A stretch of 64,000 nucleotides of DNA, taken from positions 248,001 to 312,000 of the forward strand of contig JAPDFW010000088.1 in the NCBI GenBank assembly GCA_028826165.1, given 5' to 3'. Both the position numbers and the translations under genes were made by a program. Shown piece by piece: positions 35,771-45,100 of this stretch. Under the pieces are notes generated by a model. It was not told the origin of the DNA, searched no databases, and was given only the letters and a program-made list of their open reading frames with translations. This DNA is from Anaeramoeba ignava BMAN. Its lineage: Eukaryota > Protista > Anaeramoebae. Position 1 is the stretch's first letter. Each line of letters starts with the position of its first letter.

Positions 35771-38442
35771 TTAAATATTTTCAGAAATTTTCATCATGCT
35801 ATTTGTTGTTAATAAAACTTCAGGAATTAAATCATAAACAGCTCGATAATGTATTAAAGAAAGTGATAATTTTGCTGAATTAATTAAATCTTGAGAACGA
35901 CTAAAACAAAGCATAATTCCTGATAACATTTCTTGAAACAATTCATTTGAAAGATAGAATTTAATTTCATTTTCAATTTTAATCTTTTTTTCTTTTTCAT
36001 GATATTCTGGATAATAAAGCATATATTCAACCCATTTTTCTTGTGAAATTTGATGGATTTGCTTTGTGACAGTTTCTTGATCAATATCAAATGCTTTTTC
36101 CGAACCAATTGTTGCAATTCTTGCACAAATTGCGCAATAATTTTGGAGAGAATTAATTGGCATTTCGGAATGATATTGATTAAATTTTGAAAGTAAAACT
36201 TTTGCAAAAAGTGCAGAATTCAAAGTGGAAAAACTTTTTATCATTGGAATATTTTCAATATAAACTAATTTTCTTTGTTGCTCTTGGAAATCATGCTTTT
36301 GCAAACTTGATTCAGTTAATTTTTGTACTTTTTGAGCAAAAGGCTTATGGAAAACAGAAGGAATTTCAAGAGAAACTGGATGAAAAACTCTTTTTTCCTT
36401 TGATTCAATTTCGGAATAAAAAACTGACAAAAGAAACGCTTGTATTGATGCTAATTTCTGAAGATCTCCTTCAGTAATTTGTTGTTTTTGCTTTGCTTGT
36501 GGGATTGATGAATGCGTATAAAAATATAAGAATTTCCACACTAAAATCGGGAAGTATTTAATTGTAAATATTTGTAATTTTGATGTTCCACTTTGATACC
36601 AATCATAAAACCAATGACAAATTGCTTGGCAATCCTCATATGATTTCCTTAACAGTGAATGATGAACCAAATTATTTGTAAATCCTTCATTTTCAACAAG
36701 AGAATCCACAATTTGCTCTTTGAAATTCTTGATTTTTTAAATTGTTTTTTTTTTCAAAATTCAAAATTGAAAATTTTTCAAAATGTCTATAAATTGTTTC
36801 AAATATTCTAATTTTTTTTTGGAATATCAATCAATACATTAATTGTATCAATATAAGTTACTAATAATTGTTTCTTTTTCATTGCTTGCGTAATTTCATT
36901 AAATAAACTTTGGAAATCGGAATTTGCTACATTCTAAAAATTTAAATTTAAATTTAAACTTAAAAATAAAAATAAAAATAAAAATATTCATTTTACTTTT
37001 GTTTTTGCTCCAGCCAATTTTAGCATTTCTATTACTTCTTTTTGCGCTATTTTTTTAATTGCACAATCTAAAGGAGTATAATTCTATTATATTTATCAAA
37101 AAAAAAATATTTTTTTTTGTTTCCAAAATGAATATATGATGAAAATGATTGATTTTTAAAAATTAAATTTATATTTTACTTTCTATTTCATTACCAGTAA
37201 ATTATTTTTAACATCTGTTTTACAAATTGAATTTATTTTTTAATTTTACTTTCTTTGAATTTTTTTTTGTTAATTTTTAAATTTTATTAAAATTTCAAAT
37301 TTTTCTTTTTTTTTTTTTAAAATGTTTCTACATTTGTAATATTAAGAGAAGGTTTGCAACTCAATAAAGCCTTCATACTTTCTTCATTTAATTTATTAAA
37401 ACAAGCAAAATGAAGAGGAGTATCATCCTAATAAAAAAAATTATTTGATATTTTTTTTTGGATTAAATATCAAATAATTTCCAAATCAAGAAAAAATTGT
37501 TTTACTTTCTAAATATTTGGATTGAAATTATCATTTTGAATTTAATTTCTATCTTTTAAAAATGAAAGATTAAAGTTTACATTCTAAAAAAAAATATTTT
37601 TCTTTCTTTTCAATATTTTTAATTGCCAAATTTTTTTTATATTTGAATATTAACATCTCGGGAATTAATATCAGCTCCTGAATCAAGTAATAATTGAATA
37701 AGTGATGCAACAGCATTTGCTTGACAAGCATAATGTAATGGTGTTCTATTCTGTAAGTTATTATTTATTAATATTTACAGTTGAAAAAATTTTATTTGGA
37801 AAAATGATTAAAAAATTTTATTTGGAAAAATGATTAAAAAATTTACATGCTTTTTGAATTGAATTAAATTGAATTAAATTAAATAAAAATCAAATAAAAT
37901 CAAATTAAATTTTATTATTTTTTTACTTTCTAAAATGGAAAATAATTTAAAAAGAAATTTTTGTTTTAAATGATTTTGATTCATTTTGATTTTTTACATT
38001 TTTTGAATTAACTTCAGCTCCATGTTCAATTAATAATTTTGCCATTTTAGTATTTCCTAATGAACAGGCAAGATGTAAAGGTGTAAGTTGCTTTATAAAA
38101 TAAAATAGAAACATCAAATTATTTTGAAATGAATTTTTTTTTTAAATAAAATTTATTAATGAAAATAAAATTTTATTTAAAAATTACTCGCTTTTTGAAG
38201 TAAAATTTTATTTAGAATTTTTAATGAAATTTTTTTTTGGGAATTTTATTTAAATTTTTTATTTTACATTCTAAATAAATTTATTTTTTAAAAAATTTAA
38301 TTTAAGAAAACAAAATTTTGATAAAAATAAGTTTTTTTTTTTTTTTTACTTCAGTTTTTTTATTAATATCTTCTCCTTTATCAAGTAATTGAAGAACTAA
38401 TTTAGAATCAGAATTTTGGACAGCTTCGTGAATATTTGTCAT
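35771..38442 (-). CDS. Ankyrin-repeat (5x) - hyccin/FAM126 fusion; main exons 38442-38350, 38090-37998, 37750-37655, 37427-37332, 37083-36997, 36933-36838, 36727-35771, plus eight putative 3-nt microexons
   Basis: Ankyrin TPLH motifs (QLTPLHLAC, NRTPLHYAC, DDTPLHFAC, NYTPLDCA). Hyccin motifs CHWFYDWYQSG..LQIFTIKYFPILVWKFL, PSVFHKP, YRAVYDLIPEVLLTTNSM. All junctions are phase 0. Confidence 0.8.
37180..38270 (-). other. Eight putative 3-nt microexons: 38270-38268 AAT, 38190-38188 CGA, 37929-37927 AAA, 37849-37847 CAT, 37583-37581 AAT, 37508-37506 AAA, 37252-37250 AAA, 37182-37180 AAA
   Basis: Each is AG|NNN|GTAA on the sense strand, with exactly two per inter-repeat gap. They split each gap into three 67-97 nt introns and restore the ankyrin hairpin length. 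Confidence 0.8.
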
Positions 38443-39112: not shown

Positions 39113-42100
39113 CTATTTAACTTCATTTGGTTGATTTAAATCAAATACGTCATTTAAATCAGTTAATTTTAATTTTGGAGCAATATTCATTGATTGAAGT
39201 TCTTGAAATAATAATTTGCAAGCATAAGGCATTTCAAGTTTGGTACAATTTTCATAAGATTTACAATATGGACACCAACCATCATAACCCAAAGATCCAC
39301 ATTTCTTAAATTAAAATTAAAATTAAAATTAAAATTAAAATTAAAATTAAAATTAAAATTAAAATTAAAATTAAAATTAAAATTAAAATTAAAATTAAAA
39401 TTAAAATTAAAATTAAAATTAAAATTAAAATTAAAATTAAAATTAAAATTAAAATTAAAATTAAAATTAAAATTAAAATTAAAATTAAAATTAAAATCAA
39501 AATTAAAATTAATATTAAAATTAAAATTAATATTAATATTAAAAATAAAAATTATTGATTCAAAAATCGGATAAAAATTTATTACTTACTCCACAAACAG
39601 TAACAATAAATAAATCAGAAGAATACATTAATCGTTCTTGCAAAAGTAAACTTGATCCATATCCAACTAAACAATCTCTCTCCATCTCACCTAATCGCAA
39701 ACCACCACCTCTTGCTCTCCCCTCTGTTGGTTGTCTAGTTAAGGCTGTTCGAGGTCCCATACTAAAATCAAGAAAGAAAAATAACAAAAATAAATATTTC
39801 AAAAATCAAAACCAATAAATAATCCACATCAAAAAATGAAGAGGATTTTCTTGAGGATTTTTCCAATTGAAAAAAAGGGTTCTTAAAAAATACTTTGAAC
39901 GTGCAAATATCTTATCCATAACCATATGCTTTAATTTTTGATAATAAACAGGACCAAAGAAAATATAAGCAGAAAGAGGCAATCCATTAACGCCTGAATA
40001 AAGAACATCCTTCCCAGAAAACGAGTATCCATATTCAATGAGTACGTTCATTAAATCAAGACTTCTATTTCCTGAAAAAACTGTTCCATCTCTCAAATTG
40101 CCATCACAAAGTGCACATTTTGAGCCCAACAATTCTATCATTTTCCCAACTGTCATTCGACTAGGAAAACCATGGGGATTCATGATCATATCCGGAACTA
40201 CTCCGGTTTCTGAGAAAGGTAGATCTTCCTTCTCAACAATCAAGCCGCAAACTCCCTTCTGTCCATGTCGACTTGAGTTGCCTCCCCAGAAAGATTTTCC
40301 TTTTCTTCTCACATAAATAACCCCGCTTGTTGTTTCGCATGAATAAACTTTCCCTGAATACTCAATTAATCCCTCTTCTCTTTCTTTTTGATTCTCCGTT
40401 TTTTCAAGTGATTTCAATCCAATGCTTGATCCAATGAAAATTTTGATATTGTAAATTTTTTCCTTTTTTTCCTTCCTTTTTTCAATATCTGCTGATAATT
40501 CTGAATGCAGAGATAATTGCTGAAGAAAATTTAGAAACATTTTGTTCTGTGTTTTGAAGCTCCAATGCTCTTTGCTTTTTCTAAATTTGTTAGTATAATT
40601 ATCATCAATTTTATGTTCTTCAAGTTTAAGTATTGTTTTTAAAAGAAGTTGAGAATATTCAGTGTTTAGTTTCCAAATCCAATTTGGGATTTTTGGGAAT
40701 TGTTCCCATTTTTCATTTCTTAATGATTTAAAATATTTGAATAACTTTCCATTTTCAATAATAATTTCCTTTTTTCCAAATTCGTTGTTGATTTTCAAAT
40801 CAAGTTTTTGGCAAGTTGACAAAAATAATTTGCGGATTGATTCCGAATAATTTAAATTAATTATCAATTTTTTCATCCTTTTGTTTTGAGAAGAAACAAA
40901 AGATTGAATCCAAAAAGCAAAGAAAATGATCCAACTTTTGAAATTTTGTGATTGAATGATTCCGTCTAATTTAAAGTTAATTTGAGATGAGTTTAAATTT
41001 TGAGCTGTTTTTTTAAACTCTACATTTTCCAATCCGAAAACATCTTCAATATTTTCCAAATCAAAATGTGTTTTTGTTGGGATTTTGGCGAATATTTTAT
41101 GATTCAAAGTGACCAATTGATCGACAGCATTATTTCGAAGAAAATACATTAATCCGAAATGATTATATTTGAAAATGCGAATAGGATGTTGATAAAAAAG
41201 ATGTTTTCCGTCAACCAAAGTAGCGACTTTATGGGAATAATTTAATTTTTTGAAGGGAATCCAACCATTATTTTCTGTGAGAATTTGAGTTTTTGGATCG
41301 TAACAGAATTTATCTCCCAATTCAGGTCTTCTTGTGCTTCTAATTACAGATTTAACTAATAATTGTGTTGATTTATTGTTTGTCAAGATGACTCTATCAA
41401 TAACTCCTTCGGTTGATTTGTAAATAACTGGAGATGATTTGTGTTCAATTTTTTGAACATTTACAATAGTGTCTGTTGTACTTTTTGGAACTTGTTTGTT
41501 GAACATTACTTGTCCATTTGATATTTTCAATCCTGGTTGACAAATTCCATCTTCATCAAGTAATTTAAATTTGATTCCTCTTTGTAGCTCTAGTTCTGAT
41601 GGTGAAACCAATTTATCGAATGATTGATTTGGATATTGTGATATTTGTGCACTATATCTTCTATAAATCATACAACGACCGTAACCGAGATCCAAAGAAG
41701 ATTTATTTAAAATGACTGCATCTTCGATATCATAACCTTAATTTTTGATTTTAAATTTTTGATTTTAAATTAATTTTTGATTTTAAATTAAATTTTTGAT
41801 TTTAAATTAATTTTTAATTTTAAATTAATTTTGATTTTAAATTAAATTTTTGATTTAAATTTTTGATTAAGATTCTAAATTAAATTTTTGATTTTCTACC
41901 AGAATAACTCATAACAGCAATCATCGCATTCTGACCAGCAGGTAAACGATCAAATCTAAATAAATCGGAAGCCTTAGTTCTTACTAAAGGCTTTTGAGGA
42001 TAACACAAATAATAAAGAGCGGAATCAACACGAGTCAATTCATTTTCCGCCAAAATACTCATAGCTTGCTTGCCCATAGCGCATTGATAAGTGTTTCTAG

Positions 42101-45100
42101 GAGATTGATTATGATGAGGAAAAGGGATGATTCCTGCACAAATCCCAAGAATAGTCAATGGTTCAATTTCAAGATGAGTTGTTACACCAGGAATTATTAA
42201 GTTTTCATAAAGAGCAATATTGCAATTACTTTCTTCATTCACATCCAAATATTCAAGTATCCCATTCGAAAGAAAATATTTGAATATTGATTTCGAATAT
42301 TTCACTTTGCCAAAAAAGTTCTGGCGATCTTCAATATTTTCAAGTGGTTGTGACAACTGTTGAATATGCTCCTTTGTGATTCTTGGCTTTCCGTTTTTAT
42401 CAACTATGATAAGAGGACGGCATAATCTTCCTCCATCACATGAGATCTCGATAAAGTTCTTCTTCTCGTTGAAGAAAATTGAAACAAATTCGGCAATTTG
42501 AGCCCATCTTCTCAAAATGCGAAATTGCGATATAAAAATAAGCGGTTTTCGATGGATCCCAATTATACGCCCATTAAGAAAGATTACAGTTGCTTCTCCT
42601 GATGATAATTCTTCTCCCGAAAGAAAATCAACTTCTTCAATGCCTAGCATAAGGGCTGCTCTAAACACAGGCTCTTCTTCAGAGTCTGTTGTGATGTGAG
42701 AAAGAAGCGCAAGATTTTTCACAAGTCCACAACTCTCGCCCTCAGGAGTGTCAGAAGGGCAATTATGCGTCACAAACCCATTTGCAACAAATGTGTGATT
42801 GATGCTTTGTGTTGTTAGATCATAAACCTCCTTCACCTTTGTTTCAGGAGATATGCTGTCAACGGGGACAAAAATCATCCCGTTTTCAAATTTAAAATTT
42901 AAACGGAATTTTTCAATTGCTTTTTCTTCTGTGACTTCACTCTTGCTTTTTAAATGTCTATAATAAAGCAAAAACTCTCCCGTTATTCTCGCATTCTGTT
43001 CTGCAAAGAAGCAATAACGGAAACCAATTTTTTTCCAGTAATTTAAGAAAGAATCTTTTGGAAGAAATAATAAATTTGATGAATACATTTCTTCTGTTGT
43101 TTCAATCCCAAATTCTCTGAAAAGAAGTATTTGTTGTAAGATGAAATTTTTCGCAAAACTTTTGCTTGCACAATTTCTTTTGAATATCCCATTTTGAACC
43201 AGATCACTTTCCACAAAATAGCCATGAACGCTCGAAAGCCATTCTCTTTTAATTAACTTGTTTGATTCTAAAATCCATTTCGGTATTTGTGCAAATTGCG
43301 AATTTTGCTGCTGAATATTTATAATATCCAATGGATGTAAAAGAGATAATAAAAGATAAATCAAGGCGTTATTTTTGCAAATGATGTTGGAACTTCGTTG
43401 AAAATTTTTCGATTTTTCCTTTTCTTCGATCCAAATTGAATCTGAAAATCCAATTGATTTGCAATCGGATATTAATTGAGAGGCATCTTGACTTGAATCC
43501 ATGCAAAAAATGAAATGGATATCATTTTGATCGACTTGTTGGTTTATTTTTAGGTTAAATTGTTTCGATATGATATTTCCGCGGGAGATTAAAGTTCCCA
43601 ATAATCTTGTTAAAATGGATAATTTTTCATTTTGACTATCCAAAGGAAGCAATTTAATTTGATCAAGTTTTTGGATTATCGAATTCAAGTTAATATTTGG
43701 AAATTGGATTTGCATTTGTTTTTCAGAAGTGATAGCGAAATGTGTTTTGTTTTGAGTTTTCGAAGGATTTTCCAAAGTGTGTCTAATACAAACACAATCA
43801 TTGCGAGTTAAATGCTGGGCTTGGACAAATCCTCTTTTTGTGAGAAATGGATGATCTTCTGTCACACAAATTTCTCTATCAGTAACCGTTTTAACTGTGA
43901 ATAGTTTTTGTTTTAACGAATGGATATAAAAATGCTGCTTTTCCGTGATTTTGGATGTTTTTTCTTCAAGGGATTTTGGGTTTACTGTGATTATTGAAAT
44001 GTCTTTTTTTTGATTGTAATAAAGATCATCTATAAAGCATGTGTTTATTTTATCATCCATTAAAATTGATGTATCTTTGGAGCAACACAAAATCCCGAAC
44101 TGACTTGTTTGTAGAGATCTTGGACCACTTATTTTTCTTGTTTTTTCAAATTGTGAAGAGATTCTAGTTACCATTCCTTTTTTTTTTTTTTAATTTAAAT
44201 TTGAATTTAATTTGAAATGATTTGAAATTTTTTTTTTGGAATTTTTACCTAAACAAGAAATGTAAGATAAACGAGATAAAACTTGAGTAATCCCAGCTCT
44301 TGCCATTTTAAATCTTTTCAGAGTCCAATTACCGGTTGCAATAGCTCTAACCAAACCATTAGTAATTGTATCAATACGAATAGACTTAACAATATCAAAC
44401 TGAGCAGCCAAGTTTCTTTTGGATAAAGAAGCATCAGCAATACGAGACAACTCAGTATTAAATTTCTTGAACAAATCATCAAACAGAATGGCAAGTAAAG
44501 GACCAGTAAGTTCCAACCGTTTATTTCCATAATAGTCTCTATCATCAAGAAAATTGATGTCTTTATTTGCCTTTAAAACACGACGAACCATTAATGCTAA
44601 AGTGATGCTTTTCATGCGCAAATCTCCGTTTTCAGCCTTTATATGTGATAGAATAACTCCTGTTACTACATCAAGTGCATATGATATTGGAACTTGTTTT
44701 CTTCCAGGTTTTTGAACCTTTTGTTCGTTTGTAAATGTACATTAAACTCTGTTTTTGTGTGAATATTTGAAGTTTCATTGATTCTTGAAATGATGCACTT
44801 AATGAGGTTAAAATAAAACTATCTGTTCCAATTAATTGAATGATTTGTTGATCGCTTTGTATTCCTAATGCTTTAAATGCTATTACAATTGGTATTGCTT
44901 CTGAAAATGTATTATGTTTGAGATATAACTTAGATTTTTTGAGGATTACACTTGTTCTACTGATTCTTTCGTGTGTTGTACTATTAAATAAATTTTAATA
45001 ATATTTTAATAAATATTTTAATATTATTTTAATATTATTTTAATATTTTAATATTATTTTAATATTATTTTAATATTATTTTAATATTATTTTAATATTA

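Follow-up and report, generated by a model that had tools for sequence, protein, structure and literature searches.

Paired One-Codon Exons Probably Supply the Hairpin-Tip Residues of an Ankyrin Gene in Anaeramoeba ignava

On the minus strand of the window (the whole stretch of DNA analysed, 64,000 nucleotides of one contig), Anaeramoeba ignava BMAN carries an ankyrin gene of five large exons that runs from 38442 to 36988, and each of the four gaps between these exons holds two triplets flanked by splice-site motifs. Going by the sequence, the eight triplets are probably one-codon exons in phase 0, normally all included, which give each ankyrin repeat two residues at the tip of its hairpin. 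The gene structure is real and unusual; the triplets are very probably coding, and their inclusion in this gene is probably constitutive. Codon-sized exons themselves are already known, and what is notable is the regularity of the arrangement and its genome-wide scale in a protist.

Layout of the Ankyrin Gene

All exons of the gene lie on the minus strand. Exon 1 (38350..38442) starts with ATG and consists of 31 codons that encode a degenerate N-terminal repeat; its match to the Pfam ankyrin profile (PF00023) is weak, and the public gene models agree on its borders. Exons 2 (37998..38090, 31 codons), 3 (37655..37750, 32 codons) and 4 (37332..37427, 32 codons) all pass the Pfam cut-off, with E-values of 1.4e-10, 1.6e-8 and 2.6e-4, respectively. 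Exon 5 (36988..37083) encodes the capping repeat, in which the TPL motif is present and no Pfam ankyrin match is found.

The end of exon 5 may take either of two forms. Termination at a TGA would give a protein of 165 residues, eight of them from microexons, while splicing between a donor at 36996 and an acceptor at 36934 would give an ankyrin-hyccin fusion of about 513 residues. The hyccin-domain coding region lies downstream (35771..36933, minus strand; PF09790, E 1.5e-35), and both public models of the gene join it to the ankyrin exons through this donor and a normal-looking intron of 63 nt. The fusion (35771-36996, minus strand) is perhaps real, its short introns being plausible. At the acceptor 36934, a triplet followed directly by GT could be a ninth cassette, yet it opens a coding-like frame.

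Two neighbouring features were also recorded. The minus strand at 39806-44621 of the window encodes the second-largest subunit of RNA polymerase, which carries an intein (PF14890, within the frame 41880-44174) and so agrees with what is known of the intein load in Anaeramoeba (PMC10710043). Outside the window, about 57 kb away and on the opposite strand, C89:228520-228609 (plus strand) gives an ankyrin match whose score equals that of exon 2, and a single scaffold of 321,359 bases has two public proteins that are nearly identical; the region is probably an inverted duplicate of the ankyrin locus.

Cassettes and Introns in the Gaps

The first-pass annotation had described two AG-NNN-GTAA cassettes in each gap, encoding N+R, K+H, N+K and K+K, and all eight are present on the minus strand. 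The first gap contains one-codon exons for Asn (38268..38270) and Arg (38188..38190), the second for Lys (37927..37929) and His (37847..37849), the third for Asn (37581..37583) and Lys (37506..37508), and the fourth for two Lys (37250..37252 and 37180..37182). All eight are in phase 0, meaning that the reading frame is kept when any of them is skipped. They divide the gaps (227-259 nt) into twelve introns of 79, 77 and 97 nt, 68, 77 and 96 nt, 71, 72 and 78 nt, and 79, 67 and 96 nt, every one of which runs from GT to AG with a GC content of 8-17%. The cassettes are thus flanked by canonical AG and GT, and introns of 67-97 nt are, as had been proposed, of the usual size: the accessible text of the genome report gives 32,108 introns, with 76 nt as the modal length and a GC content of 8% (PMC11550330). 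Not every large exon has GTAA as its donor: GTTA and GTAG each occur once.

The eight AG-NNN-GT motifs in the four gaps compare with a mean of 0.47 after base shuffling (maximum 5 in 20,000 shuffles) and of 0.28 after dinucleotide shuffling (maximum 3 in 2,000). An equal abundance on the other strand had been named in advance as counter-evidence, and the antisense strand of the four gaps holds no such motif. Among all other spacings of AG-N(n)-GT, with n from 1 to 12 and 3 left out, the gaps contain one motif in total.

Coding Character of the Triplets

The genomic case for a coding role of the triplets is strong, and they very probably have one. Counted from the Asn/Asp anchor to the T of TPLH, the hairpin loops at the four junctions comprise 8, 7, 7 and 7 residues with the cassettes and 6, 5, 5 and 5 without them, so the earlier count of seven residues at three junctions and eight at the first was correct. 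Intronless ankyrin repeats of the same genome provide the reference: of 110 such loops, 101 have seven residues and two have six, in a count that broke ties towards seven and left loops shorter than five unscored. A repeat period of 33-34 residues together with a seven-residue hairpin linker is obtained only when the cassettes are included. The expectation of canonical 33-residue repeats held for exon 2 (31 codons plus two) and not for exons 3 and 4, which reach 34 residues with both cassettes (32 codons plus two).

The length of the large exons and the number of cassettes complement each other elsewhere in the genome. Six further genes, spread over five contigs, have the cassette layout. In four other ankyrin genes, exons of 32 codons are followed by one cassette, giving a period of 33 at 13 of the 16 junctions scored (a partial count) and of 34 at the remaining three, and one further ankyrin gene combines a 31-codon exon with cassette pairs. 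The 62 cassettes parsed include no stop codon, and the commonest residues that they encode are K (14), N (12), D (8) and Y (7). This composition resembles that of intronless repeats at positions -4 and -3 (relative to the T of TPLH), where K and N are the commonest residues. Loop length and composition therefore both support the claim that the cassettes provide the two variable residues of the hairpin, at these same positions.

Conservation between paralogues points in the same direction. In L001 and L030, located on contigs C1 and C90, all seven triplets are identical, while the large exons share 59% amino-acid identity and 61 of 160 codons, and 10 of 11 introns align no better than shuffled sequences. 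Among these triplets is a K+N pair that is also kept in a third paralogue, and at this conserved junction both cassettes together produce an eight-residue loop in all three. The first junction of the present gene gives a loop of the same length, and at such sites one cassette may be optional. The triplets thus keep the frame, avoid stops and are conserved, the signature expected of coding microexons, and the genomic tests strongly support the proposed splicing of one-codon exons in succession.

Public gene models join the large exons directly. KAJ5071482.1, which represents this locus (505 residues), and KAJ5071463.1, apparently a near-identical copy on the same scaffold, place the borders of the large exons identically and pass over the cassettes. 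The same omission is seen in several further ankyrin models from A. ignava, whose loops are abnormally short. Gene predictors had been expected to miss these exons, and they do. We take the skipping for an annotation gap like that known for plant microexons (PMC8831610), although it speaks slightly against inclusion. The protein searches turned up no copy derived from a transcript; one of them covered 85-271 residues, a range below the fusion of about 513. A sequencing run available as contigs (X1, kind unknown) contained 0.22 of the words, as compared with an exon-only share of 0.21-0.29; this was given no weight, since a DNA run lacking the AT-rich introns would look alike.

Genome-Wide Occurrence

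Cassette layout is probably a genome-wide habit of gene structure in A. ignava. A scan of 42,843,398 bases on 147 contigs for adjacent AG-N(n)-GT cassettes spaced 55-85 nt apart found 1,042 pairs for 3 nt, compared with 115, 88 and 86 for 2, 4 and 6 nt, many of these latter pairs arising in simple repeats. A control with the reversed pattern was high at all sizes (705 for the 3-nt pattern) and uninformative, so the genome-wide case is carried by the comparison of lengths and by the avoidance of stops. Neither TAA nor TGA occurs in either slot of any adjacent 3-nt pair in the genome, ATA and TTA are found 10 times in one slot of these pairs, and stop triplets represent 8.5% of intron triplets. 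A comparison of ankyrin with other genes had been suggested; the layout is not specific to ankyrin genes, as non-ankyrin genes share it.

Ankyrin repeats are numerous in this genome (7,824 candidates at first look), and long intronless arrays coexist with cassette genes that have one repeat per exon. An ankyrin-BTB gene on contig C1 (697130-701907, minus strand) mixes paired 3-nt cassettes with 6-nt cassettes and short exons. In A. flamelloides, the single ankyrin-BTB gene inspected has repeats with neither introns nor cassettes, too small a sample for dating the layout.

Alternative Splicing and Other Explanations

The triplets could be real exons that are skipped alternatively at substantial rates, creating a combinatorial repertoire of ankyrin loops as in the NACHT-ankyrin genes of truffles. 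We assign this a low but appreciable probability. The frame survives every skip, the cassettes lie at a surface hairpin, and codon-sized exons are alternatively spliced in other ankyrin-containing genes, according to the accessible text of PMC4986451 and PMC13449251. At the first junction, moreover, there is one residue too many, and Asn or Arg alone would restore the canonical seven, making this the one site where a choice is plausible. The other three junctions have no spare cassette, meaning that skipping would delete a residue and not exchange it, and in the K+K pair either skip yields the same product. The triplets also encode consensus residues that are kept between paralogues, and short loops are nearly absent among intronless repeats. 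The suggestion that skipping remodels the binding loop combinatorially consequently fits this gene poorly, because two cassettes fill two slots and their loss can only shorten the loop.

A broader version would have one-codon exons throughout the genome form a regulated splicing code that varies the binding loops of the expanded ankyrin repertoire. Such a code would be independent of that of truffles and possibly serve the recognition of symbionts or prey, with the Asn/Arg pair of the present gene as a switchable element; we consider it unlikely.

It is quite improbable that the cassettes are absent from the mRNA, each gap of 227-259 nt being removed whole and the motifs being splice sites that have decayed or act as decoys, or intermediate stops in stepwise splicing. 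KAJ5071482.1, KAJ5071463.1 and the several other models that skip the cassettes agree with this, and the genome does contain longer introns. Removal of whole gaps would, however, leave loops of five residues in many proteins, and it does not account for the strict size of 3 nt, the avoidance of stops, the codon-like composition, the complementarity between 31+2 and 32+1 arrangements or the conservation of the triplets. By established splicing chemistry, the use of both the AG and the GT around a triplet necessarily retains that triplet. Finally, motifs that arose in AT-rich DNA by chance or through an artefact of assembly are scarcely credible: the enrichment of AGNNNGTAA over the whole window is moderate (19 vs. 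10.4), but the eight cassettes all stand in register on one strand within 1.1 kb, above the shuffle maxima of 5 and 3, and both the recurrence of the layout on five contigs, in six further genes, and the conservation between paralogues contradict this reading.

Possible Mechanism and Origin

If the one-codon exons are normally all included, as we favor, their splicing would not require the recognition of an exon of 3 nt. The introns are short and very AT-rich, so that each could be defined across its own length (intron definition, with the genome mode at 76 nt) and removed in turn. The triplet would be joined to one neighbor first and, after this step, would be part of a larger exon. The layout may have arisen at the repeat boundary by intron gain or by tandem duplication of a unit composed of an intron and a codon, and may then have spread through the duplication of repeats and genes.

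Arrays of cloned intron-plus-codon units elsewhere in the genome suggest tandem duplication as one source, in which case the present gene would be an old and diverged example. Within the ankyrin gene, recent tandem duplication is not evident, as 5 of 66 intron pairs align marginally above shuffles.

One such array belongs to a BTB/coiled-coil gene (C1:409316-413127, minus strand), where about 32 one-codon cassettes alternate with near-identical introns of 70-80 nt and spell a coherent low-complexity peptide rich in R, N, Y, Q, D and P; a few units have no GT, through decay or assembly error. Beside the array lies a kinase-like gene (C1:407830-408410, minus strand) whose reading frame seems to shift near 408190, perhaps through an error of assembly. 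A second family of cloned introns carries one-codon cassettes for residues that are mainly hydrophobic (I, M, L, F and G) and is found at C1:942331-942792, C1:1058078-1073173, C139:5536 and C143:8631.

Should RNA confirm the structure, a free-living metamonad would be splicing roughly a thousand one-codon exons or more, frequently in direct succession, and would offer a tractable natural system for studying how the spliceosome handles exons of 3 nt without exon definition. Many public A. ignava proteins would then have incorrect ankyrin binding loops, and the count of 32,108 introns would be too low.

Comparison With Known Systems

No report of microexons in Anaeramoeba was found in the literature text that was searched. 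Single microexons of 3 nt are known in animals, including the diglycine/triglycine switch of cytohesin-1 (PMC6314551) and RPS24 (PMC12207440), and plants have microexons of 1-15 nt that are often missed by annotation, with an adjacent pair of 5 and 12 nt on record (PMC8831610). These resemble the A. ignava exons in being very small, internal and commonly unannotated. By contrast, they are isolated within their genes, whereas those of A. ignava are systematic, paired and linked to repeats, with about 1,000 adjacent pairs.

The micro-exon genes (MEGs) of Schistosoma also contain runs of short exons, mostly in multiples of three, but these exons are mostly about 15 nt long, the introns between them measure 0.1-5 kb, and the products are secreted and alternatively spliced (PMC10526429). 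The exons of A. ignava have 3 nt and lie within the ankyrin fold; with 8 of 165 residues from microexons and introns of 67-97 nt, the gene does not belong to this class. Brown algal ROCO genes share the arrangement of one repeat, here an LRR, per large exon. They differ in that they diversify through whole repeats that are shuffled or skipped, and the accessible text of PMC11378527 and PMC3341825 mentions no one-codon exons.

The closest parallel is the NACHT-ankyrin family of Tuber melanosporum, which reportedly diversifies through the alternative splicing of codon-sized exons (Iotti 2012, PMID 22289772, cited via the accessible text of PMC4986451 and PMC13449251). Both systems combine multiple codon-sized exons with ankyrin-containing genes and an expanded family. 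That of truffles, as described there, concerns one NLR family with tens of mini-exons and extensive alternative splicing, while A. ignava has a fixed number of one or two cassettes per repeat that matches the loop length, conserved triplets, and the same layout in non-ankyrin genes. The scanned frames and the public models contain no NACHT domain, the neighbors being hyccin and RNA polymerase subunit 2, and membership of the Tuber-type family is accordingly rejected. Surplus codon-sized exons, which splicing of the Tuber type would call for, are lacking at three of the four junctions, and the triplets are conserved in paralogues. The first-pass annotation had spoken of an unusual system of splicing and diversification; the unusual structure is real, while diversification finds no support in this gene and codon-sized exons have, on the portions of the truffle literature cited, a precedent. 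If RNA bears the structure out, the overlap with that precedent would suggest that one-codon-exon architecture has a recurrent hotspot in the ankyrin hairpin.
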